Below are positions 2,739-60,998 of a DNA stretch of 64,000 nt, in pieces. Under the pieces are notes generated by a model. The model did no database searches. It saw only the letters and a program-made list of their open reading frames with translations, and was not told where the DNA came from. Position 1 is the first letter of the stretch. Every line of letters starts with the position of its first letter. A program made the position numbers and the translations under genes. The stretch is from Trichosphaerium sp. ATCC 40318 (lineage: Eukaryota > Protista > Tubulinea), in NCBI GenBank assembly GCA_038496445.1, contig JALMLS010000022.1, positions 1-64,000 of the forward strand, written 5' to 3'.

Positions 2739-3890
2739 TTATTTAAGTACAATGACTTCACCAGTTTCGTTCCATTCCTTAAGTTCTCCTTCTACACCAT
2801 GATTGAAAAAACACTCTCTTTGTATTTGCCCATTTTCATGCCATTTTTTACAAACTCCATGTCTTTTGTTATTAATTAAAGAACACTGAAAGTTCAACTG
2901 GCCATTCTCATACCACGCCTTGAACATTCCTTCTTTTTTCCCATTAACATGATTACACTGAATCTTCATTTGTCCGTTTCTAAAATATGATACATGCTGT
3001 CCATCTTTGATGCCTTTGACATACCCCACCTCTCTTCTCAATTCACCAGTTTTATAATAATCTTTACAAATACCATGTTGCTTATCATCAACATAAACAC
3101 ATTGAACCCTCACTTGTCCATTGTCAAAAAAATCTTTATACTCTCCTTCTTTTTTATCATTCACATACATGCGGTCTTCCATAAAAGAACCATTATCATA
3201 CCATGATCTTTGTCTACCATTCATTTTACCATTGACATAAAAGAAATGATTCTGTATACTTCCATTTGTATGCCACCACTTCTTAAAGTCACCTTCCATC
3301 TTCCCGTTCTTGTAATAATAAAGGCACGACAAGTTACCATTTTCATACCACTCCTTGTGTTCTCCCTCATTTGTACCATTTCTATACAACCCGAATATAA
3401 AAGGCTGACCATTTCTATGCCAAGATTTATGTTCACCATCCATTGTACCATTCACATATATCAGCTCACTGCTCTTTGGACCTTCTTCAAACCAGTGCTC
3501 AAATAATCCTTCTCTTTTCCCTTTCACAAACATTCCTCGACTAGACAACTTACCATTATCATGCCATCTCTTGTATTCTCCATCTTCCAGTCCATTCTTC
3601 CAGTATTGGCTAGTTTTAACTTGCGATAATGTAACATCACGGAAACAAATCCATTTTTCATGTTTCTCAAAGTTTTCATCAAAACGTGTTGTTGTCGCAG
3701 CTTGTTTGGATAGGATTGGCCATTTTATGTACACTTCAGCGTCTAGATCTATAATATCAAGTTGAAGCTCTAAAGGAAGCTGTAGCAGTAAGTTACTGTC
3801 GTTTTTATTTCCATTTGTCTAAGTTGGGTAGTTAGTACGAAATAGCGCTTATTTATTGCTGAGTTAATTTACCTCGTGTTTTGTTGCCAT
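2739..3890 (-). CDS. F-box-like N-terminus plus MORN-variant (YwqK-like) repeat protein; 2 exons
   Basis: Exon 1 is MATKHE (3890-3873), followed by a GT-AG intron with ACTAAC branch. Exon 2 begins TNGNKNDSNLLLQLPLELQLDII (F-box-like LPxE), then about 12 repeats of G..EG..K.W..NG.L....Y. Confidence 0.85.
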
Positions 3891-22793: not shown

Positions 22794-24431
22794 TTAAAAC
22801 TCTGATTTACTGTTTTCTGGAGGACACTCTTTAAGACGATGACAAGATTTAGGATCTTGTTTGTACATTGAAGGAAATAAATATTCCAGAGTACAAGGTG
22901 TTCCAAAAGTACCAGATAGTCTTTCTGTATGTGCAACTTGGTGTGGGCAGAAGCCTTTAGTGTATGTTACAAACCTACTTAATCCACTTGCTGTACCAAT
23001 TATAACATTCACGTGATCAAGTAAAAAGTATTCCAGCCATAACCTAGTGCCTTCATCTTTGTCTTGGCTTTCTTCTTCTGGAACATAAACAACTCTGTTA
23101 GGATAACGTGATGTGATAGCATCAAAAGTGATACTGTTTATGCTTGTTATAAATATAGTCTTCACATAATCTCCATAAACATCAATACACTTATAGTATA
23201 AATCTAAGTCATCCAGACTTTGAATACCACCTTTACCAATATGTACATGAACACCAATAGACGGTTTGCTTGCATCAAAGTGTTCTTTTACGAATTCATC
23301 AACAGCCTCTTTAGTATTTTTTGTTGGTTGTATTAAAGCTTTTGTAACTGCTCCCACAACAATATCAAAGTCAGTACACATATAGGTACGTGAACTAACA
23401 TCAACCTGAGGTTGAAGTACATTCCAATCAACAAAACTATTCCAGAAATAATGAGACCATTCCATGTTGTTAAATTGTTCGCCGTCAAACCCACCTAGAG
23501 CAAAGTGAGAGGCCCCAAAGTTTGGGTCTCCATTCATAACGTAGATTCCTTCTTTTCCTGAAGGATCAAACGTTGATAAAGGCATGTCTTTGTTGTATTT
23601 AATATACTTTGATGAATCTAAAGTCCAGTTGAATTTCCATCCAGTAACACCTTGCCAAAATGGCATTGACTCAACATCAATAAAGAAAGCACGGTCGTGC
23701 TTTATAGCAGTAAGAAAAGCATTAGTTACTCTTTTAATCTGATCACCTAAAAGACTTTTGCACGTGGGAGTGCATTTCTGGATTAAAATCCTTTGTTCTT
23801 CAACGGGTTTTGCTAATTCGTTCTTTCTTAGACTGACATATCTATCTAACCAAGGAGGATACTCATCCAAGTCAGTACTCCAAGATGGCTTGAAGCGATT
23901 ACTTTGTTTGTATTCCTTTAGCCAAGATGATACTTCTGGAAGTAATTGTGATGGAGGCAAGATAATTGTCGGTCTAGAAACTGAAACAGGTGCCGAAGTT
24001 GCAACTTCAGTAGGGTTTTCTTTGCCATCTTTGTCCGCACTGCCTCCCTAAGTAGGTTCGTAAGCCTTTTTCTACAATATGGCGCCTTTTAAGCGTGAAA
24101 CTTGCTCATCACGTGTGTAGAGGTGATTCAATTCGAGTTGTTACAGAATATTTTTGCTCGACATTTTTTAAGTACCTTGTCTTGTTCTTGCTTTTGTTTT
24201 GACGCAATCATACTAACTCCAGGTATATTTTTAATATTAATTAAAGCTTCATCTCCGAAATACACCAAAGAAACAAAACAAATAGTCGCAATAGTGAACG
24301 TAATCAATAACCGCCGTTTCTTGTTACGAATAGAAATTGAGTAAAGAAAACAAGTTATTTTAAACTATCACGTGTCGTACAAAAATAAAAGAGCAAATCT
24401 TTCTTCCCGTACTGATGCGGCGTCTACGCAT
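22794..24431 (-). CDS. Type II membrane glycosyltransferase, alpha-1,2/1,6-fucosyltransferase-like (GT-B fold); 3 exons
   Basis: Spliced MRRRISTGRKICSFIF|KRRLLITFTIATICFVSLVYFG (TM)..|stem region. Catalytic exon has LLGDQIK..AFLTAI..DRAFFID, SIGVHVHIG, IFITS, EYFLL...IIGTASGLS (FUT motifs I-III). Confidence 0.8.
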
Positions 24432-30405: not shown

Positions 30406-31743
30406 TTAAGTGTAAATTTTGTGAGCACCACCAAGCGCCTTGATTCCCTCATCTGTAATATCTTCACAATTATAAAGATTAATGGTATGTACTCCAGCAA
30501 GTGCTTTAATACCTTCATCTGTTATCTTGCAGGTTTGAAGGCTAATGTGATGAACACCAGCAAGTGCGGTGATGCCCACATCTGTTATGCTCGTATAACC
30601 AACAGTAATAGTATGGACACCAGCAAGAGGTTTTATCCCTTCATCTGTTATGTCTTTACAACCTTCAAGATAAATTGTATGTACTCCAATAAGCGCCTTT
30701 AAGCTTTCATCTGTTATATTTGTATAGCTGAGATTAATATGGTGAACACCAGCAAGAGCCTTTACCCCTTCATCTGTTATTCTCTCACAACCACACAATG
30801 AAATGTGATAAACTCCAGATAAAGCAGTTATCCCTCTATCTGTAATTTGCTTACATGAATTTATGATAATTGTATGCACTCCAGCAAGAGCTTTTATCCC
30901 TTCATCTGTTATGTTTTTACAACTTTCAAGATAAATTGTATGTACTCCAATAAGCGCCTTTAAGCTTTCATCTGTTATATTTGTATAGCTGAGATTAATA
31001 TAGTGAACACCAGCAAGAGCCTTTACCCCTTCATCTGTTATTCTCTCACAACCACGCAATGAAATGTGATAAACTCCAGATAAAGCAGTTATCCCTCTAT
31101 CTGTAATTTGCTTACATGAATGTATGATAATTGTATGTACTCCAGCAAGTGCCCGAACGCCTTCATCAGTTATGTTTTGGCAACAATAGATACTAATACT
31201 ATGTACTCCAGCAAGTGCACATAACCCTTCATCTGTTATGAGTGTTTTACCAAGATTAACATGATGAACACCAGAAAGAGCCTTGAAGCCTTCATCTGTT
31301 ATTTTTGGACATGAAAAGATATCAATAGTGTGAACACCAGAAAGAGCTTTTATCCCTTCATCTGTTATATTGTCCCGACAAAACCTAACATCAATGTCAC
31401 GAACACCAGCAAACATTTTGACAATATCATCAGGTTCAGATTTGGCAACAATTTTGATTTTAGTATGTTGGAGAGTACTTGGATGTTGTAAAACTGCTGA
31501 AGCTTGTGAAGCATTTGAAATATGAACGATATGGTATCCGATAATATCATGAATGATAGAAGCAAGGCGATGACATGTTTGACAAGCCGCAAACCTTGCT
31601 TTTGTCGTTTTACGTAAAATATGAGCTAAAATCTCTGTTGGGAGGTCTAGAACGCTTTTTTCAGCGCTAGTACGATGTTAGTATGCGAATAGGCTAATTT
31701 ACGCGTACGTTTGCTCTTCGGTGGTTACTATCGTTTTTAACAT
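30406..31743 (-). CDS. F-box plus cysteine-containing LRR protein (about 15 repeats of ~22 aa); 2 exons
   Basis: Exon 1 MLKTIVTTEEQT, intron, then exon 2 AEKSVLDLPTEILAHIL (F-box), in frame with repeats GVHxIxLxxCxxITDEGIKALA. Confidence 0.92.
30631..31152. repeat. Near-perfect 261-bp (4-LRR) intragenic tandem duplication
   Basis: 30631-30891 and 30892-31152 differ at 7 positions by manual alignment. Confidence 0.95.
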
Positions 31744-42536: not shown

Positions 42537-43365
42537 TCATGCCGTAAACATGTAATTGAACACAGGTCCTTCTTTGCCAATATTACAATCCTTTACCAGT
42601 ATACTATCATCCAACTTCTTTCCATGTAAAATAATGTGTACCTTTGATGTTTCTAAAGGTTTGTCAAGATGAGTCGCTAGTTTTTCTTTAACAACTGACA
42701 TCTCATCTGAAGGTTCAACATCAAGTACATTTATACCACCAGTAAACTGATTCTTCATTATTATTTGTGTTCTATTTTCTCTGTAAAGAGACAGAATAGC
42801 ACCACTTGAAACGCCACATTCTGATAAAGTGCACGTGTCTTCTTTGTTCTCTATTTCTTTAATACGTTGCTGGTACTCTGGTATTTTCTTCTGTATCATT
42901 ATACATCTCTTTAGATGTGATTTAGTATCAGAAAGAGAAACATTATCGACTTCGAAAGTCACGCCAGTATCAAGAATTTCAATGCGAAGAAAAAACTCTT
43001 TTGACTTTATGACCTTTTTAGGTTGTTTACCATCTTTTTTACATTTCTTTTTCTGAAGGCGCAGTGTGGATGCGTCAGAGATATTGTACTGTTTAAGGGA
43101 GTGAGGGTCTTTAAGAATAATGTTTGTGTAAGAAAGCTGTACTTCTTCGCTTGGAGCGTCTATACACATAAGTATCTCAACGGTTTGGCGATCTATTTCT
43201 ATTTTTGCTACAATTTACCACAACCTATGTTTTAACGCGTTTTTACTGTATTCTACGCGTACCAGGGTGCTTTTGGATCATTTCCATCACTTTGTAAATT
43301 GTATCATTTTCGCTACAGTCCAAACTTATTGTTTTGCCTGTCAGTGTTACTATAAAGAGCTGCAT
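42537..43365 (-). CDS. Protein of three diverged ubiquitin-like domains; 2 exons
   Basis: Exon 1 MQLFIVTLTGKTISLDCSENDTIYKVMEMIQKHP; intron about 43263-43212; then ..SLKQYNISDASTLRL, IPEYQQRI..TLSECGVSSGAILSL, LDVEPSDEM..VKEKL..IILHGKKLDD. No di-Gly motifs. Confidence 0.9.
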
Positions 43366-43472
43366 TACGATTATGAAGGGTGTTCAACTGCATGTAGACG
43401 AAGGTTGACTATTGCTGTCACATTGTCACTTCCAACTCGTACAAATGCCACGGAAGGTGGTGTTACGCTTCA

Positions 43473-46308
43473 ATGCACGCTTTAAATAAACTTGCACGAA
43501 AGGTGGACGTCAAAGTTTTAGATGACTGGTACAAACCTTCCTCTGTCAGTTTACTACGAGCTCGGCGTAAACAACGCCTGAAAAGGTATTCTTAACGCCG
43601 TTGATTAATTGGTAATTTACCATCGCGCATCAACACTCTAATTAGTCATTTCTTACCATTTTGGTGTAGTTTTGGAGCGCTGTATGCCTTTTTACGCAAA
43701 GTTTATCCAAAACACGATTGGAAGCCGTGGTTATTCGGGTACATGCCAAACAATAACAACGCGGAGGTTCTAGGCGTTTATCCTTTTTTTTGAACCGCCT
43801 GACTTCAAATTCGCTTTATTTGTGCTCACTAGGGTATAGACGCGCACCAGATGGTTTCTACAATAGCAAAAGGAATCAAAGACGTACTTTTGATGCCATG
43901 GGAGAGGCAATTGGTGTAAAACACATGGATGATTGGCACAGTGTAATTATTGAAGATTTTAAAGAAGCAGGCAGTTTAACGGTTATCAACACCTAGTACG
44001 TTTTTGGCAGTATTTTGCACCTGTACATAATTCAGCTTGTGTTTGGGATGCATCAATAATCGCATCACAGTCACGTGAGTGCTATAAAAAAGAAAAAGAC
44101 TATCACGTGACTGTGGAACAGATAATTTTCTTTTTGTTGTTTTTGTTTGGAATTAAATCGTTTGCTTAGCTATCAGGGATCTGCAATCAAGGCACTGCAA
44201 GGAATATATCCTGAGTATACCTTCAAGCCATGGATGTTCGCGTAAGTAGTAGGAAGACCAAAAGGGTTGTAGGCGGTATGTGAATTCACTAATAACTTAC
44301 TAGTCAAGCATATACCCATTATTGGGCTAATAAGGATAATCAGCTTGATTTTATGGAAAGCATGGGTTCTATAATGGGTTTTAAGACCGTAGAAGATTGG
44401 CATAAGGTAAAAACTAGAGATTTGAAACAGCACGGAGGCATTATGTTGATAGATATGTACGTCAAATTAACAAAAATCATTTTGCAAAGAAAGAAGTCAT
44501 CAATTCGTTAATACTAATTTATTTCAGATATGGTTCGGTGACAAATGCACTAGACGCCTTGTATCCAAAGAAAGAGGCTACCGGATGGAAATCTGCGGCG
44601 TTTGCGTAATGCTAATTGGTATTGGTGTTGTTTTCTTATTTTTTTCTTGCGGTAGAGCGAAATTCAAACAAGCCTCTATGAACATGCACTCACATGCTTT
44701 TGATGTACTTTCTAAAAAACTTAATTATAAGACTACCTCTGAATGGGCTGGAGTTGATTTTGATACATTTAAATATCATGCAGGGAAGACTCTGTTGAAT
44801 CGGTACGATTTTTTTTAATTGATTTTACAAGAATGGTTTTACCATCACCTTAACTCATTAATAATTTGTTCAACGTTGACTACATTACTTTTATATCATT
44901 TGACACATAATGTACATTTACTTTAACAATGTAAAAATGAAGGGTTGCTTTTATTATGACATTTTTAGCTTTTTTTTAATCACTTTGCTCAATGTTTTTG
45001 TTTAGATACAGTGGGTCTACTTTTTGTGTTCTTTCGAACGTTCTACCTAATTATGATTGGGAAGCGGTAGCACCACTATTTAGGTACATAATGAGATGAA
45101 TTACATATAGCAAAATGGCTGTAGAAGTTTTTTTTCGAAGCTTGCTTGAAATCTTTCACTAGTGATAACTCATTTATTTTCTTCAAAGGTCTTACGGCAA
45201 ACATTCCTACGGATATTGGAATAAACAAAAGAACCGTGTTCATTTTATAAAGAGCGTTGCTAATTCATTACAAGTTCGTGAAGCCAGTGATTGGTAAGAG
45301 AGAATCAATCGGGAATTATTATCTAATTTAGTTTGAATAGGTATCGCGTTTCTATTCACAGATTTGTTAATGCAGGCGGTTCGGGAATGCTATGGAATTT
45401 TCCTGATATACTAAGTCATGCATATCCATCTGTTAACTGGGAGTGGAAGAATTTTGGAAAGAGCTTTAAGAAAGCACAACAGCGGTACTTTTTCTCATAA
45501 TTTACCAAAATAATTATTATACGATTTGACCGTTTCTCTTGCATAGTGTAATGATAGATATGTTACGGATAATATTTCCAAAGTATCAAATTATTGAAGA
45601 ACATGTTTTACAGAATCATGAATCTACAGATGCAGCTGTAAGGTATGGAATACCTCGAAACGTTGTTCAACTTTATCTTTTTTTTTTGTTACAAGGATTT
45701 TTAACTGTACCTACCTGACAAACAATTTAGTGTTGATGTGTTCATCCCTGATCTAGATTTAGTATTCGAGTACCAAGGTACATACAATATTTGCTTATTT
45801 ATTGCTTAGTAGAGTATTAAAATACAATCCAACTGAAATTGTTTGGGTTACAAAAATTTGTTGACAATTTTTTCTTTAGGTGAGCATCATTACCATGATA
45901 TTGTATCTTTCTCCATAACAACGGCTGTACATAAAAACCGTGATGCTGAAAAAGCGCAGTTATGTAAAAATCAAGGCACGTGACATCTGATTGGATAATA
46001 AATGGCTTACCGATTAAACTAGGCTTAACTCTTATACCTGTTCCTTATTGGTGGCGTGGGGATACAGAAAGCCTTAAAGCCACAATATTGTATTATAAAC
46101 CAGACATAAATATCACCGTAAAACCTGGCGTACGATTACCACAGATGCCTAGGCTGCTAGGTCAAGTAGGACGAGGTAAGCGAAAACGTGTTCCAAAAAA
46201 ATATGTTGCAAATTTTTTGTTTCAACTGTTGATTTTTTCTTTTTAGATGCTACTAAACAAGCAACAATTATGTCACCAAATAACTACCTTGTATGCAGTA
46301 CAGGGTAG
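43473..46308 (+). CDS. Trp-rich helical-repeat protein (5 repeats) with C-terminal Vsr/DUF559/RAP-like nuclease fold; no ligase domain; about 15 exons; start uncertain
   Basis: Manual splice gives repeats (Y/F)W..K.NQ..F.......LG.K..EDW..V.......GG..L...YGS...AL..LYP...WKPW.F. These are followed by KKAQQR..IIEEH..VDVFIPDLDLVFEYQGEHHY..RDAEKAQLCKNQGLTLIPVPYWWRGDTESL, ending IMSPNNYLVCSTG*. Confidence 0.85.
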
Positions 46309-47064
46309 AGTTATTGTAAATAAATACAACTTGATCAAAGAGGTGCTAAGCTATTTTGATTTGAATTCTTTTTTGAATGTGTTTTGACAGTTATTTTGCC
46401 TTTAACACTTTTAGTTGCAGAGGTGGGTTGTGAAAAGCTACTCTGCTAGAATATGCAACCTATCCCATAGGTGTATCTGGAAACAGCGTTATTTGTTTAG
46501 TGTCTTTTCGAATCTTAAAGCACTTGCTCTACTTCAACCGTTAATTTAAGTTACTTCAGTAAACTGCTGAAAGTATCAAAGCACTTGTACATGGACTTAC
46601 TATCTTCTATGTACCTTCAACAGCCTATCAACAACACATTAGGAGGGTACCTATATGGTATTGGTAATAGCAATCTATGCTGCGGAATGTTCAAACTTGA
46701 TCAAGCACCCTTTGTTAAATGAAATAAAACTAACTGATAGGACAAAACAGTACGCAATACAAAATATAGTTCACACTTTTGGGGTTTTTTGGGTCACCCA
46801 TAAGTTGTTGGGTTACATCTTAACGCCGATAAAATTTTACCTCAGACTTTTAGCAAGTAACATAGCTGTTGTGTGCTTTCTGATAGTGTTCAAGTATACG
46901 AAGTGATCTATTTTAATGGGTTTTTTTAGCCCTTTAAGTCCCAACAATGCCAAAGCTTTTCTATAAACCCTTGTCATAAATGCGAACTTTTAGGACAATC
47001 TTACAAGTGTAATCTAACACATAAAAGCAACTCCTTGACGTAACCAACAAAAATAGAGTTAAAA

Positions 47065-48204
47065 ATGGTAGAGTGGGATTGTGGTTGTGGCATGATTATC
47101 GTCATCGCATGTGCATCTTTAATTCCAGTTTGCCTTATTATCGGTACAATACGCCTATTTACAGTCTATTTTATACTTACTATACGTGTAAAGGTATACC
47201 AATGATAGTTGTTGGAAGCTTAGGGACGAATGAAACACCATTTTATGCGTACACAAAAGATATGTTTTATCTTAATCAGAATCTTACCAAACACTTGTTT
47301 TATAGCATTCCATTATGTCCTGTGACTGGTTCTCAAATGCGTACTTATGTATCTGTTCCTTTAACATCTCAAAATGCTGTATGCCCACCAGTCACAATAA
47401 CTGGTAAAAAATTCAAAGCCGCTTTCTTGTACCCAACTACCTCTGTAGCTCAAGGTACGTTCCCACAATCACTTTAGTACGAAAGCGTTCTTTGAGTTTT
47501 TTTAAAACCGTTGCACGTGTTGCGAGGAGGTATACATGTAAAACCCACAATCACGTCGTTAGATCAAAAAACCTGTTGTATCTAATACTTTAAGTAGGAC
47601 TAATTGATTCCAATATCAATGGCATAGAGGTAAAGAATATCACGCTAAATACGGGCGGAGATAAGGCAGGTAAGCAGCCGCACCATACAAATTTGAAAAT
47701 AACATTAGTTTTTTTTTTTGCAGACTCTAAGAGAAGTGTTATCAATCAGGGAACCGAGTTCACATATATTGACTCTAGAGTGCCTGGATGTTTATCAAAG
47801 AGCTGTATTCAGGCAGCTAATCAAGATTTTGGTACTCAGTCATTCAAGTCCGAGACTTACGATGTACATTTTGTGTTTTTTTCTACGTTTCGTGCCTTTC
47901 TCACTTTATTCAGTCACCAACAAATTTCACCTTGACTGTAACAATTGTCATGGATGGTAGCCAGACTTTTCAACCTCAGATATACATGCAAATGCGCAAG
48001 ACAGGTAATGATTTGCAACATCACAAAACGATTGTCTGTTTTCTGTATACTATTTTTTCTTTGGTTTCACGCACGCTAACTTCGTTTCTTTCAGGACTTT
48101 CCGCACTTCAAATAGCTGGGATTATATTTATACTATTACCTCTGTTTTTGTTATTCGGGATTTGCTTTTTTTTCTCGTCACAAGGCTGTAATTGCGGACT
48201 GTGA
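47065..48204 (+). CDS. Two-TM membrane protein with a lumenal/extracellular loop; about 5-6 exons
   Basis: MVEWDCGCGMIIVIACASLIPVCLIIGIPMIVVG (TM1); N-x-S/T sequons; GLSALQIAGIIFILLPLFLLFGICFFF (TM2); ends CNCGL*. Confidence 0.7.
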
Positions 48205-49387: not shown

Positions 49388-50934
49388 GTGCATACAATTG
49401 TTATTGATAATGGTTCAGGAGTATGTAAAGTAGGCTTTGGAGGTGAAGATGCTCCAAGAGATATAATACAAACCGTTGTAGGACGTCCTCGCGTCCATAA
49501 CAAATCACACAACGCAAAATGTACAACATGCGTTCACTTGACTTTTTTTTCACCATTTTTTTTCTTTCGAGGTTCGATCACGTGCTAGTCGTACTTTCAC
49601 TAGTCAGCTTCAAGCTGTTTTGTAACCAAATATACTTGCAACCCAGCAGTCTTTTGTAAATTTCACTCACCACGTGTAAACCTAACCTCCATACTATTTT
49701 TGTGTTTTGTCAGAACTTTCAGCTTTTTTATTTGTTTTCTAATTAATTGTTGATAGCAAAAGAGTATGTTGGAGCAGAAGCTATAAAGAATGCTCCTTTT
49801 ATTGATCTGGTTCGACCAAAAGAAAAGGGTATAATAAACGACTGGGATGCTATGGAAAAGATATGGTCTCATTGTTTTTATAACTCTATTGGTGTAGCTC
49901 CAGAAGACTGTAAAGTACTGATATCAGAAAACGTGATGGAAGCAAAAAATAACAGGTATGCTATATAAAAATATCACATGATTAGCATCTATCAACTACC
50001 ACCTGCATAAGTGTAATACTAAAGACGTTTGACTGACTGTTTTCTCTCAGAGAAAGAACTGTTGAAATCATGTTTGAGACATTTCAAATACCGGCTTGCT
50101 TTATTGCTATATCATCTGTTCTATCAATGTATGCTTGTGGTACTACTACAGCTTTGATAGTAGAGTCTGGTGATGGTGTAACAAATATTTTTCCTTGTTG
50201 GTGGGGATATACATTCAAAAATGCCATGATCTCTGTTCCTTATGGCGGAAGTAATGTTACAGACCTTCTTATGAAGAAATTACAGTCTTCCGACAATACG
50301 TTATCTTTAAATAGAGAAAGAGCACGAGATATAAAGGAGAAAACGTCATATGTCGCATTAGACTATGAGAAAGAGATGAAAGATGTTAAAGAAAAAAGTT
50401 ACACACTTCCAAATGGTAAAGTTATAAAACTTGGCTCTGAGCTTTTTGAAGCCAGTGAGGCCATGTTTAATCCTCAGCTGATTGGAATGGATATTCCTGG
50501 TGTTGATGATCTAGTTATTGAATGTGTAACCAAATGTGATATTGATTGTAGAAGAGTACATCGCACAACACATTTACTTTATTTTCATTTTTTTAGTCTT
50601 GTTTTTTTTAACTAAATTAGGGGTTGTACAATAACATTGTTCTTTCTGGTGGTAATACTATGACGAATGGATTTAGAGAACGTCTTTATAGAGGTGTGAA
50701 ACAACATGCTCCAGAAAGAGCACGTGTTGTTACAGTAGCACCTCCTGAGCGCAAATATTCTACATGGATTGGTGGATCAATTGTGGCGTCTTTGTCATCA
50801 GGATACTCCTATAATGTTTGGTAAGCGTTTACTTGTCTGATAAGGCGCTCACTCTTATTATTAAATTAAGGATTAAGAAAGCAGAGTATGAAGAAAGAGG
50901 TCCTAATGTTGCTTTTGCTAAGTGTTTCTATTGA
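49388..50934 (+). CDS. Divergent actin / actin-related protein; at least 5 exons; start codon uncertain
   Basis: [122 protein letters not shown]. Confidence 0.95.
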
Positions 50935-57219: not shown

Positions 57220-60200
57220 TTAATGAACATGTTCATTATCTGATTGTTCCATAACAGTCTGCCATGTCATTTCATGACGTCTTTGATAGTAGAAAGGATG
57301 TAAAGGCTTACCACGAGAAGTAAAACCCTAAATAGAACAAAATGAACAAATGCAATTAAAAAAACGAAAAAAAAGATCCAATTCAATGTTACCTCGTGTT
57401 TGATTGTCAATACAGCACCATAAGGTGGTGGATTTTCAACATCATGCCTTGAGCATTTTATAAACACTTCTATACTATTTGTACTAAAGTGCAGAGATTA
57501 ATGAGATGACAATTAAAAAAAAACTCTTCATTCATTTTGATTCATAGTATAATTGTTCGTTCCAGCATTACGATGGCAATGAACCAAAATATAACAGTGT
57601 AAATGAAGTAAAAGGCATACGGGTTTGTTACGTACAGTTGGCATAACAAGAAACTTCCAGTATCATGTGGTCGTATCATCATAACTTCCATATCATAAAA
57701 AGGCTAGAGTTAAAAATTAGCAAGTTAGCTAAAACCAAACAAGAGTTTCAAAGAAACGTTTGTAACTTATTTTCTAATATACTATTTGGCATAAAGATTA
57801 AAAGGTACGGCTGCCCGTGATAAGCACGTAAATGTCCATAAGAAAGCAGGGCATAAAATATTATGATGTCGTGCAAAAAAATGAAACAAAAATGATTTTT
57901 GCTATCACAAATCGTTTCTTTGCTTACCTTGTACTTGACAATACAACTCTGTCTTCCCGGGATATATAGTCCTTCAGGGTCTCTAAGAACTAATCCTTCA
58001 CCTAATTGTGTATAAGCTGTTAAGTAGATGAAAATCAAGGTTTAGTCACGGTACCACCACGTGATAACACTTTGTTCAATAATTCTTTAAGATGATCTTT
58101 CCCATTACACTTGGTATGCTCAACAACATCTATTATCGTAGATGAAAAATCCAATAATGATTTTTTGAGTTTAGCATAACGTTCTATATCAAGGATTAAA
58201 AGGTTTCATAGTCAATACAATAACGTACTTGTAAATGATAAGTTTTCTGATACAATATCAAAAACTTTAAACCTTGCACCTTTACCATTATCAGTCACTA
58301 ACCTCCATCATAAGAAAAGTCATTCGTACCTTTCCAACGAGGTGTTGTTCTATACAATGAGCTTGTGAGTAAATCACGCGTATTGTGACCCATCCTAAGC
58401 ATTAACTGTTAAAAACAATCCAGAAGCACAAAAACAAAAACATGTACCATAATTCTCCATCCAAAACCAGATGAGCAGGCAGTTGCTGTTTAACAGAAGA
58501 TGGACATGGTATGATTTTACCTTGTCTGGAATAGAAGCTAGAACCATTCCACAAGGCCCGAATACCATCATACTTCTCAGAAACATACCTATTAAGAAAA
58601 AATTAAGAAAAAAAACTCGAGTTGATGTACAAGCGTACCATCCTTTATAATCTTCATTTTCGTCCATGTTGCCGAGTAACATTACTTTATTACTCTCTGA
58701 AGCTGCTATAATAATAATAAATACGTGGCTATAGTACTCAAATGTTTGATCAGAAAGACGAACATATTTGTAGTACAGATTTCGGAGGTTTTAATAAAGG
58801 CGAAACACCCTTAACAGGTTTCAAGTTGATATGAGGTGCATGATGAGCAATGGTGGATTGCAAAGACTCTGTATCACCTTTCCACCAATAAGGCACTGGT
58901 ATCACTGTAATACCTGTAAACGGATTTAAGTATGGCGAATGACATTCCGTTTAATTGGTTGGATTGCTTTCAATACCTTGTTCTTCACATGTATGAAGTT
59001 TCTCCAAATCACGTCTTTGTGATATTGATGCTGGTCCGAATTTAGAAGGGTAGTCATTATAATGTTGTTCTCCTTGGTATTCAAGAGCAATATTAAGACT
59101 TGGTAAGAAGATATCAAGTGTCATCCAAATAAAAGTAGAATCTCTTCTCAATCCTATATTATACTCTTCAACGATTTCTACACCAGGTAGTACTTTCTTT
59201 GTACACTGAAGTAGCTCTCTAATGTGTTTTAATAACTCATACAAGAAGTTAAAGCGCGTACAGTTGCGTAGATCTCTTATTTGGACTTGCCATTGTCGAA
59301 GAATCCCAATCATGTGCTGGATAAACAGAGTGAAGTATTTGAGGCCAATACCGTACCAAACCACCTCCACCATGATCTAAAAGTTGCTGTCGTGATACGC
59401 GATACCTATATAATATACTTAGAATTTAAATCACGGAATTTGAAAGCACTACCAAGACGATATATCATTGACTTTCATTTTATCTTTTAATTCTGATAAA
59501 AACGCCTCAACATTTTTAGGCGATGTCCAAAAATTCTGTGGCCTCTTTGACGTTGGTCTAGGCATACAGTCAATAACAAATAGAATACTAAGTAACCCCG
59601 TACAAGCTACGCTCAAACTTCCAGTTGTGATTGGGGTATAGTGCTTGAAGTGTCCTCATTAGAGATGATCGATAACTATAAAAAAAAAATAAGATGATCA
59701 ACAACTCAGGTCATTAACCAAAATATAGAAGACGTACTAACGTGTAACACCACCAAGTACTCCACTTAACCTCTTAAAATCAGCTTTGATCCAATCACCC
59801 AAAGTTTTAATATCATTATCTTCAGCAGCATCATCAAGCATTAATCTTTGATTTTCTTCATCAAACCAAAAATGACTAACAACACGCCTTAAAACAAAGT
59901 TAATAATAGTGAGACACACTCATTATAACCATACTTGAACTTCCATGGTTTCCAGTTATATCGAGGGTATGTATCTGAAAGAGCACGAGCCACTGAACCG
60001 GTATACCTTTGGGTAAAACGTAAGAACCCAAAAATAGAACTAATCTAAAATGGATTCATTCTTACTTTGACAAAATGCCTCCACCACCTCCTCTTGCTAC
60101 ATCTTCTGTACGCATACTATACCACTCATGTAATGCTTTAACATTAATATTCTTAGAAACTTGTTCAAATAGTTCACGTTGAGAACGAAGATGCAAATCA

Positions 60201-60998
60201 TCAAAGTTTGCGTTTGGAAAAACTGCCACAAGCAGTTTATGCATAGAGCCTTCATACCTAACAAATATTACCCTGTAACCAAAGAAACATCTTGTCACTC
60301 CCACATGATTTGACACGTGATTCCATGACGCTTCGAGCGTACACTGGAGGTCAGTACGTACTTGCTAAGTAAACTTAGAGCTCCTTTTTCAATGAGTTCT
60401 TCAACGCGCTTATCTAGCCAATCATCCATCGTTTTAACGCCTAAGAACATACCAATCTCATCTACACGCAACATTTGATTGTTCAGGTCGTTTAGGTAGC
60501 CCATAGGAGCGCCTCTAGGAGTTTTTATGGAATGGTTCCAAATCAAAACAGCTAAACTTACGCAAAATGCCAGGGGACCCACTCAAACTGCGGGTAGAGT
60601 GCCTTCAGAGCTTTTGATAAGGAATCGTTGTACCTGATAGGTATTAGAAATAAAAATGGTTTTTATCCATCCAAGACGATCTTGCAGTGCGTAGGGAAGG
60701 CTGTAAGCGTACTTGCTGAGTAATCCACGCGCTGAAGCTTTTCGTAGCTGTAAATGTGACACTTGGTACCAATCATCGAGTGACTAATGGCAAAGGTTTG
60801 AAATTGAAGCGGTTTTGGTGCCAAATATCGAAGAGCGTGTACTTGGACATTTAGCGTACGAGCAACAATGTTTAGACGCGCTCGTTGATCATTTATATCT
60901 TCCCAGTGCTTTTGTAGGTTTTTTTGCTTTGGCGGTTTTTTTTTCGTAACTTTTGCTTGGCTTCTTGCGCGGATCAATTTAGAAACAACAACTGACAT
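57220..60998 (-). CDS. Trp-rich helical repeats (5) + Vsr/DUF559/RAP-like nuclease fold + ATP-dependent DNA ligase (adenylation and OB domains) fusion; about 21 exons
   Basis: Manual splicing gives one continuous frame. It runs through repeats (DDWY, DDWL, HEWY, GDWI, SSWY), then IVEEY..LDIFLPSLNIALEYQGEQHY..RDLEK..GITVIPVPYWW. The ligase part follows: GWYVSEKYDGIRALWNG..YSRQG, LVLDGELW, FKVFDI, GGEGLVLRDP, VKYKP, PPPYGAVLTIKHEGFTSRGKPLHPFY..RR. Confidence 0.9.

Follow-up and report, generated by a model that had tools for sequence, protein, structure and literature searches.

The RAP proteins of eukaryotes, which include FASTK and FASTKD1-5, the Chlamydomonas OPR-RAP proteins and the apicomplexan HPR-RAP proteins, are basic proteins in which helical repeats precede a C-terminal, Vsr-like PD-(D/E)XK domain. 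Vsr itself, together with DUF559 and DUF2726, forms a group within the PD-(D/E)XK superfamily (PMC3424549), and the enzyme I-Bth0305I joins a separate DNA-binding region to a nuclease of the Vsr fold (PMC3239194). Viral proteins that resemble homing endonucleases carry tandem small recognition modules and a single nuclease domain; the DNA-binding layout of phage homing-endonuclease genes is repetitive and its modules are taken to give target recognition (bioRxiv 10.1101/2023.03.23.533998). Some bacterial proteins combine DUF4046-like repeats with DUF559, and in the PPR-E and PPR-DYW proteins one repeat family occurs with and without a C-terminal enzymatic add-on. Here we analyze a gene, termed gene A, that lies on the forward strand at 43473..46308 of a 64-kb stretch of DNA from the protist Trichosphaerium sp. 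ATCC 40318 (contig JALMLS010000022.1, positions 1 to 64,000; hereafter the window), and compare it with its paralogue B at 57220..60998 on the reverse strand. We conclude that gene A is probably an intact, standard-build member of a very large and apparently undescribed protist family and that it most likely encodes a repeat-guided, site-specific endonuclease whose substrate would be DNA rather than RNA.

Gene A was modelled manually from three reading frames of 43000-47200, by splicing the coding segments together. The resulting complete coding sequence runs through 15 exons (43473-43585, 43670-43738, 43840-43995, 44170-44241, 44304-44456, 44528-44605, 44656-44802, 45006-45083, 45189-45293, 45341-45484, 45547-45642, 45731-45777, 45880-45975, 46023-46175 and 46247-46308) and forms a 1569-nt open reading frame (ORF) of 522 amino acids, from an ATG at 43473 to a TAG at 46306-46308, with an AATAAA 11 nt past the stop at about 46319. 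The encoded protein starts with five tryptophan-rich helical repeats of about 72 residues each (43473..45467), which were delimited with a hidden Markov model (HMM) of the family repeat and a column profile; they occupy residues 1-61, 62-137, 138-214, 215-289 and 290-366 and start at genomic positions 43473, 43841, 44305, 44657 and 45190. These are followed by a Vsr/DUF2726/RAP-like PD-(D/E)XK nuclease domain (residues 367-477; 45468..46099, exons 10-14) and by a 45-residue tail (46100..46308) that ends at the TAG. The family as a whole is predicted to share this build, with a basic, all-helical array of Trp-rich, ~72-residue units, weakly similar to DUF4046, and a C-terminal endonuclease of the Vsr/DUF2726/RAP-like type.

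The nuclease domain of gene A retains nearly everything that is conserved in its relatives. In an alignment of all hits from the family search described below, 18 columns are at least 80% conserved, and the invariant ones among them were confirmed in a 100-sequence alignment. In 15 of the 18, gene A agrees with the consensus (Q5, E23, D41, P45, E52, Y53, G55, H58, Y59, R75, D76, K79, P94, W96 and W97), and the remaining three show mild substitutions: M for L8, V for A50 and S for F66. The invariant Q, E, D, E-Y-x-G, H, R-D-x-x-K and P-x-W-W are all there, as are the motifs VDVFIP, EYQGEHHY and IPVPYWW.GDTESL, so that a preliminary description of this locus, which had called the nuclease motif intact, is upheld: every near-invariant family residue is kept. 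The family nuclease looks catalytically competent.

As a structural proxy for gene A we used P0018, a ligase-less homologue about 28% identical to it. Its AlphaFold2 model (526 aa, 68-sequence alignment, mean predicted local distance difference test score (pLDDT) 89.9) consists of five helical repeat units and, after them, a domain in which a helix, three strands, a second helix and a fourth strand succeed one another. Foldseek matches this last domain to Vsr (1vsr; probability 1.00, template-modelling score TM(target) 0.53) and to I-Bth0305I (3r3p; probability 0.99, TM(target) 0.63), as well as to AbaSI and PvuRts1I. At the level of sequence profiles, DUF2726 from Pfam reaches 28.6 bits against a cut-off of 24.7 in the homologue P0022 only and 12-18 bits in other members; it is unmatched in single exons of A or B, for which Pfam returned only a weak ligase match. 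Pfam RAP (PF08373) gave no match at E <= 10 with the A and B exons, ten full-length homologues or four C-terminal homologue queries, and a PDB sequence search with P0018 and the nuclease profile found nothing real.

The repeat module is the less familiar half of the protein. Its profile was built from 528 family repeats, with a consensus close to KP.gYW.s.eNQR.F...L...L.....DW..i....I...GG..LL..Y..S....L...YP...W, and gene A carries the corresponding tandem signature, W...NQR.F...DW...GG..LL..Y....L...YP...W, in units of ~72 residues. Most of its repeats span two exons and are cut by phase-2 introns, and repeat 1 lacks the N-terminal helix. The repeat region has a net charge of +20 and an isoelectric point (pI) of 9.7, in line with a family median pI of 9.3. 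In a predicted model (pLDDT 89.4), a single repeat forms a small four- to five-helix bundle, which has no significant match in the PDB or in the Swiss-Prot portion of the AlphaFold Database (AFDB); the TetR helix-turn-helix, the Slx4 CCD and the LOTUS domain were considered as likenesses and rejected, the best VIA Z of 4.2 being within noise. Pfam assigned no consistent family to 111 single repeats, and a multi-repeat query brought up DUF4046 below threshold (18.9 bits vs a cut-off of 22.8). The family repeat has no Pfam match above threshold, no match among solved structures and no literature that we found. DUF4046 (PF13255), a Bacillota family, nevertheless resembles it, as judged from language-model features of the repeat region and from fold, its sub-threshold Pfam score notwithstanding, and bacterial AFDB entries named DUF4046 or DUF559, together with two dictyostelid proteins, share parts of the P0018 architecture. 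DUF4046 is itself of unknown function, and no mention of it was found in the literature searched.

Paralogue B, 21 exons and 790 amino acids in our splice model, offers the closest point of comparison within the window. It has a basic N-terminus of about 28 residues at the start of the protein, then, all on the reverse strand, five repeats (60914-59279), the nuclease (59278-58837), a 42-residue linker (58836-58653) and a Lig E-type ATP-dependent DNA ligase (58652-57223), which is recognized by a ligase profile, by the motifs KYDG, LDGELW and EGLVLR, and by an OB domain. Ligases of this type are patchily distributed in eukaryotes and related to the kinetoplastid mitochondrial ligase K (PMC10665377). 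The preliminary description had assigned A and B the same layout of five repeats plus nuclease motif, and with both genes modelled this is what we find: the repeat HMM detects exactly five units in each, at 42-61 bits in A and 52-78 bits in B. The two proteins are 32% identical over 506 aligned residues, gene A matching the first ~500 residues of B, with about 30% identity across the repeats and 40% across the nuclease. The several shared intron positions remarked on earlier prove to be 10 of the 14 gene A introns, identical in position and phase. Among the correspondences are a phase-1 intron after the PYWW exon (an exon of 153 nt in A and 150 nt in B) and a 43-nt intron of B (59219-59261, GTACGC...TTAG), the shortest in either gene, which equals gene A intron 10 in position and phase; a suspected frameshift in B near 59262 was rejected, as this intron restores the frame. 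The repeats themselves are as diverged as had been stated, since A-versus-B repeat pairs are 16-38% identical, and those at equivalent positions are slightly more alike than those at non-equivalent ones.

The same comparison shows where gene A ends. Its last exon (46247-46308) corresponds to exon 13 of B, the final exon before the ligase, and the stop codon falls within it, as expected from the earlier alignment that had placed the end of the ORF just ahead of the partner's ligase. The GTATGC at 46291 is present but in phase 0, whereas in B the donor that ends the matching exon is in phase 2. Ligase exons had been reported missing from 46310-47060, and they are missing more widely: tblastn with B found no ligase remnant outside B in the 64-kb window, and a ligase profile made from five family ligase domains, run against all stop-to-stop fragments of the six-frame translation of the window, picked up each of the 8 ligase exons of B, with no other match below E = 2. 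Nor did tblastn with 150 relatives find any family sequence in the window besides A and B.

To place A and B in their family, we searched the 80-residue nuclease exon of B against 1.84 billion cluster representatives (E <= 1e-3) and obtained 655 clusters, at the 50% identity level, that contain the family nuclease. The best identity was 53%, which indicates that the proteins of the source genome itself are not in the searched set. Named sources comprise MMETSP protist transcriptomes, Heterolobosea sp. BB2 and the amoebozoan Cavostelium; further members lie on long metagenome contigs, next to clearly eukaryotic genes such as those for Ras, RCC1, RasGAP, catalase and CCT. The counts of ligases, tails and repeats that follow refer to the best 150 of the 655 clusters, and since the query was the nuclease of a ligase-plus protein, any bias in this sample favours ligase-plus forms. 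Even so, the ligase is absent from 145 of the 150 and present only in P0142, P0070, P0139, P0022 and the fragment P0115; the ligase-plus homologues match Pfam DNA_ligase_A_M and DNA_ligase_OB_2. Members have 1 to 14 repeats, and the stretch that follows the nuclease has a median length of 10.5 residues (75th percentile 21). Gene A aligns near full-length, over about 400-490 residues, with many ligase-less members that end at the same place (blastp E 1e-49 to 1e-72; 3e-72 for P0085). The ligase-minus form is the default of the family and the ligase-plus form, represented here by B, is rare.

A few other observations on the relatives deserve mention. Some members contain two nuclease domains in one protein, for example P0002 (1010 aa), and P0022 (859 aa, from Cavostelium) has two nuclease-like stretches and then the ligase. 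P0132, which appeared in the list of relatives, is a false positive, a TPR protein, and a second protein search, made with P0085, gave only one relative.

This census supports one part of the preliminary description and not another. The description had proposed an old and diversified family, some members of which have a ligase and others not, and the 655 clusters and the position of A and B in the tree agree with that proposal. In a tree of the last repeat and the nuclease, A groups with the ligase-less MMETSP proteins P0103, P0056 and P0085 and B with P0036 and P0100; both fall into a single set of 11 rows with moderate support, and neither is the nearest relative of the other. The tree is poorly resolved, with the ligase-plus rows scattered across it. 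What finds no support is the likening of the two genes to PPR-E and PPR-DYW editing factors, with gene A as a truncated member that borrows a catalytic domain in trans. PPR-E proteins lack a catalytic domain altogether, whereas gene A keeps its own nuclease and lacks only an accessory ligase that just 5 of 150 members possess; to end after the nuclease is the family norm, and there is no sign of a domain being supplied by another protein.

The gene model itself supports an intact gene. Thirteen of the introns have GT-AG borders, with donors mostly of the locally typical GTACGT type; the exception, the 47-nt intron 13 (45976..46022), is a GC-AG intron with the donor AAG|GCACGT. At 45964, 12 nt upstream, is a GT that could serve as an alternative donor without change of frame, and its use would delete four residues from the loop ahead of the PYWW strand. 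Only the GC donor yields the spacing seen in the family between a conserved Cys and the IPVPYWW strand (C-x4-[IL]), its position is that of an intron in B, and apart from the GC it fits the locally common form G-Y-ACGT. At its other end, gene A begins inside repeat 1, and so does its closest complete transcript relative, P0085, which likewise starts with a short first repeat. A divergent ubiquitin-like gene with several ubiquitin-like domains (42537-43365, reverse strand) has its start codon 107 bp from that of gene A, which leaves no space for a long upstream exon and implies a very short shared promoter region. The frame that stays open over 15 exons at ~68% divergence from B, the retained catalytic residues and the five good repeats argue for long-term purifying selection, and on present sequence evidence gene A appears to be an intact gene and not a truncated copy in need of a partner.

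Where in the cell the protein acts is a separate question. Of 87 full-length relatives, 29 have presequence-like N-termini, defined by three or more basic residues and none that is acidic among the first 20, and paralogue B has such a basic, acid-free N-terminus as well. That many relatives have such termini suggests mitochondria as their compartment; gene A itself has no presequence-like extension.

Viral genomes harbor the nuclease in a different context. The nuclease core is found at 31-46% identity on 68 IMG/VR loci, often in several copies per locus, as the C-terminus of 240-580-residue ORFs on phage and giant-virus contigs. The N-terminal parts of these ORFs contain tandem CapR, DUF723 or DUF4379 zinc-finger modules, and the Trp-rich repeat is found on none of the 68 loci; Nucleocytoviricota and Discosea are among the taxa of the Atlas clusters that have the repeat-plus-nuclease architecture. 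On four or more viral contigs, the ORF with the nuclease core adjoins or overlaps an ORF for an ATP-dependent DNA ligase (PF01068): L066:4787-6677, L064:1639-3470, L030:3350-5223 and L040:2682-5936, the last of which also has a Lig E-type OB_2 domain. This adjacency, which by a rough estimate exceeds chance, recalls the fused arrangement of paralogue B. Its cause may be that homing-endonuclease genes sit beside ligase genes, or it may point to how the B-type fusion arose.

How the gene A protein might work can be outlined by analogy with the viral modular nucleases. We envisage that the Trp-rich array reads a specific nucleic-acid site and that the protein's own Vsr-like nuclease nicks or cuts at the site so selected. 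No borrowed ligase domain would be needed, because ordinary cellular ligases could reseal the product, as could the attached ligase in the rare fused forms. DNA is the likelier substrate, since DNA is what the enzymes of the nearest known structures and the viral relatives act on, and since the ligase, where one is fused, seals nicks in DNA.

Several observations weigh against this interpretation. The best-studied eukaryotic proteins with a Vsr-like fold, RAP/FASTK, act on RNA (PMC11879112), and the structure that we compared was predicted for P0018, at ~28% identity, rather than for gene A. The gene model leans on one GC donor, and retention of intron 13 would lead to an immediate stop; repeat 1 is cut short on its N-terminal side, and three of the five gene A repeats have a degenerate GG motif. 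The 45-residue tail is long beside the family median and shares its exon boundary with the pre-ligase linker of B. A single origin of the ligase-plus rows is not rejected in the approximately unbiased (AU) test (p = 0.082), and gene A may descend from a ligase-plus ancestor by loss of the ligase, just as the lineage of B may instead have gained one.

The shared exon boundary also lends some substance to the idea that ligase-less A acts together with ligase-bearing B in a cut-and-rejoin reaction in trans, much as PPR-E proteins act with DYW proteins: the tail of A corresponds to the linker of B, and both classes occur in one genome, 11 kb apart. We see only a slim chance of such an arrangement. 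Members without a ligase make up nearly the whole sample and keep a catalytic domain of their own, housekeeping ligases can seal any nick, and no interaction motif is evident. A and B, moreover, are not sisters, and their repeats differ from each other as much as any two repeats would, which does not point to a shared target. More credible, if still doubtful, is that gene A encodes an organellar RNA factor of the RAP type, whose repeats would bind a specific mitochondrial transcript and whose Vsr-like domain would cleave or hold it. Helical repeats followed by a C-terminal Vsr-like domain are the layout common to FASTK, OPR-RAP and HPR-RAP proteins; the RAP domain of FASTKD4 resembles Vsr, and nuclease activity on RNA has been reported for FASTKD5 (PMC11879112); the nearest AFDB models, MMETSP-derived and 38-43% identical to P0018, are automatically named "RAP domain-containing protein"; the top whole-chain PDB matches, weak as they are (E 0.07, TM 0.15), are repeat proteins of the T. 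gondii mitoribosome; and about a third of the full-length relatives have basic N-termini without acidic residues. Gene A, however, has no presequence, Pfam RAP is unmatched in any member queried, even at E = 10, and a survey of RAP proteins reported none in Amoebozoa or Excavata (PMC8190603). The strongest structure matches at the level of the domain, like the viral relatives, are DNA enzymes, and the optional fused partner seals nicks in DNA.

The viral loci raise the further possibility that the family descends from viral homing-endonuclease-like genes and takes part in genetic conflict, either domesticated against invaders such as giant viruses or selfish and mobile, with the repeats diverging in an arms race. 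The identity of the nuclease core to ORFs on the IMG/VR loci and their multiple copies per locus, the Nucleocytoviricota and Discosea among the Atlas clusters, the expansion of the family in amoeboid hosts and the far greater divergence of the repeats than of the nuclease would all fit. We nevertheless regard this as improbable for gene A, an intron-rich nuclear gene that has its intron positions in common with an old paralogue, lies in no intron or intein and shows no target-site signature; the presequence-like N-termini of its relatives indicate instead a housekeeping, organellar role. Decay is the explanation to which we give least weight. A non-functional partial duplicate, one without the N-terminal extension and the ligase, could account for the GC donor of intron 13, the short first repeat, the degenerate GG motifs and the long tail. 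It is hard to reconcile with an ORF that remains open through 15 exons despite ~68% amino acid divergence from B, with consensus residues in 15 of the 18 conserved nuclease columns and only mild changes in the other three, and with five repeats that all score well; the GC donor is otherwise of the locally common form, and P0085 too starts with a short first repeat. We therefore favor an intact, ligase-less member of standard build as the account of gene A.

Elsewhere in the window are long ORFs for a MORN-repeat protein (2739-3734, reverse strand), a leucine-rich-repeat (RNI-like) protein (30406-31416, reverse strand) and an actin-like fragment (50070-50615, forward strand), ordinary eukaryotic genes that help to mark the window as protist nuclear DNA. 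An uninterrupted ORF of 388 amino acids (22794-23960, reverse strand) had no relative at E <= 1e-3 in a word-indexed search of 5.8 billion proteins.

The useful result of this work is a correction: the question to ask is why a few members of the family gained or kept a ligase, and not from where the others borrow one. The family is abundant in amoeboid protists, where the RAP survey found no RAP proteins. If its repeats read sequence, they would provide a natural modular targeting scaffold comparable to the PPR, PUF and TALE arrays, with a nuclease attached. A bolder extension, which we consider a long shot, is that the Trp-rich modules are new programmable readers of nucleic acid, with one short sequence stretch read per module, and that the amoeba maintains a large battery of repeat-guided nucleases directed at specific sites in organellar or foreign DNA, in which ligase-less members cut and ligase-plus members reseal.

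Set beside the known systems, the family combines familiar elements in a distinct way. It has the catalytic fold of the Vsr, DUF559 and DUF2726 nucleases and their D...E-x-x-G-x-x-H core, but gene A differs from the EDxHD enzymes in its motif, which takes the form E-Y-[QHN]-G-x-[QH]-H-Y (EYQGEHHY in A) followed by R-D-x-x-K. I-Bth0305I shares the proposed division of labor between recognition and cleavage; gene A, however, is nuclear, has 14 spliceosomal-type introns, does not reside in an intron, intein or phage, and has tandem repeats as its putative recognition part. The viral homing-endonuclease-like proteins share the principle of tandem modules before one nuclease, with zinc fingers (CapR, DUF723 or DUF4379) where the family has Trp-rich helical bundles. 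With the RAP proteins it has in common the order of domains, the basic character, the presequence-like N-termini of many relatives and a C-terminal Vsr-like fold, this last seen in the model of the homologue P0018 and not in the gene A sequence. Unlike RAP proteins, its members are built from a ~72-residue, Trp-rich, multi-helix module in place of FAST, OPR or HPR repeats, some of them carry a DNA ligase, and their catalytic residues are invariant, whereas FASTKD4 is inactive (PMC11879112). The most fitting description of the family is that of a known theme, helical repeats plus a Vsr/RAP-like nuclease, with a new type of repeat; gene A itself is an ordinary member of it.

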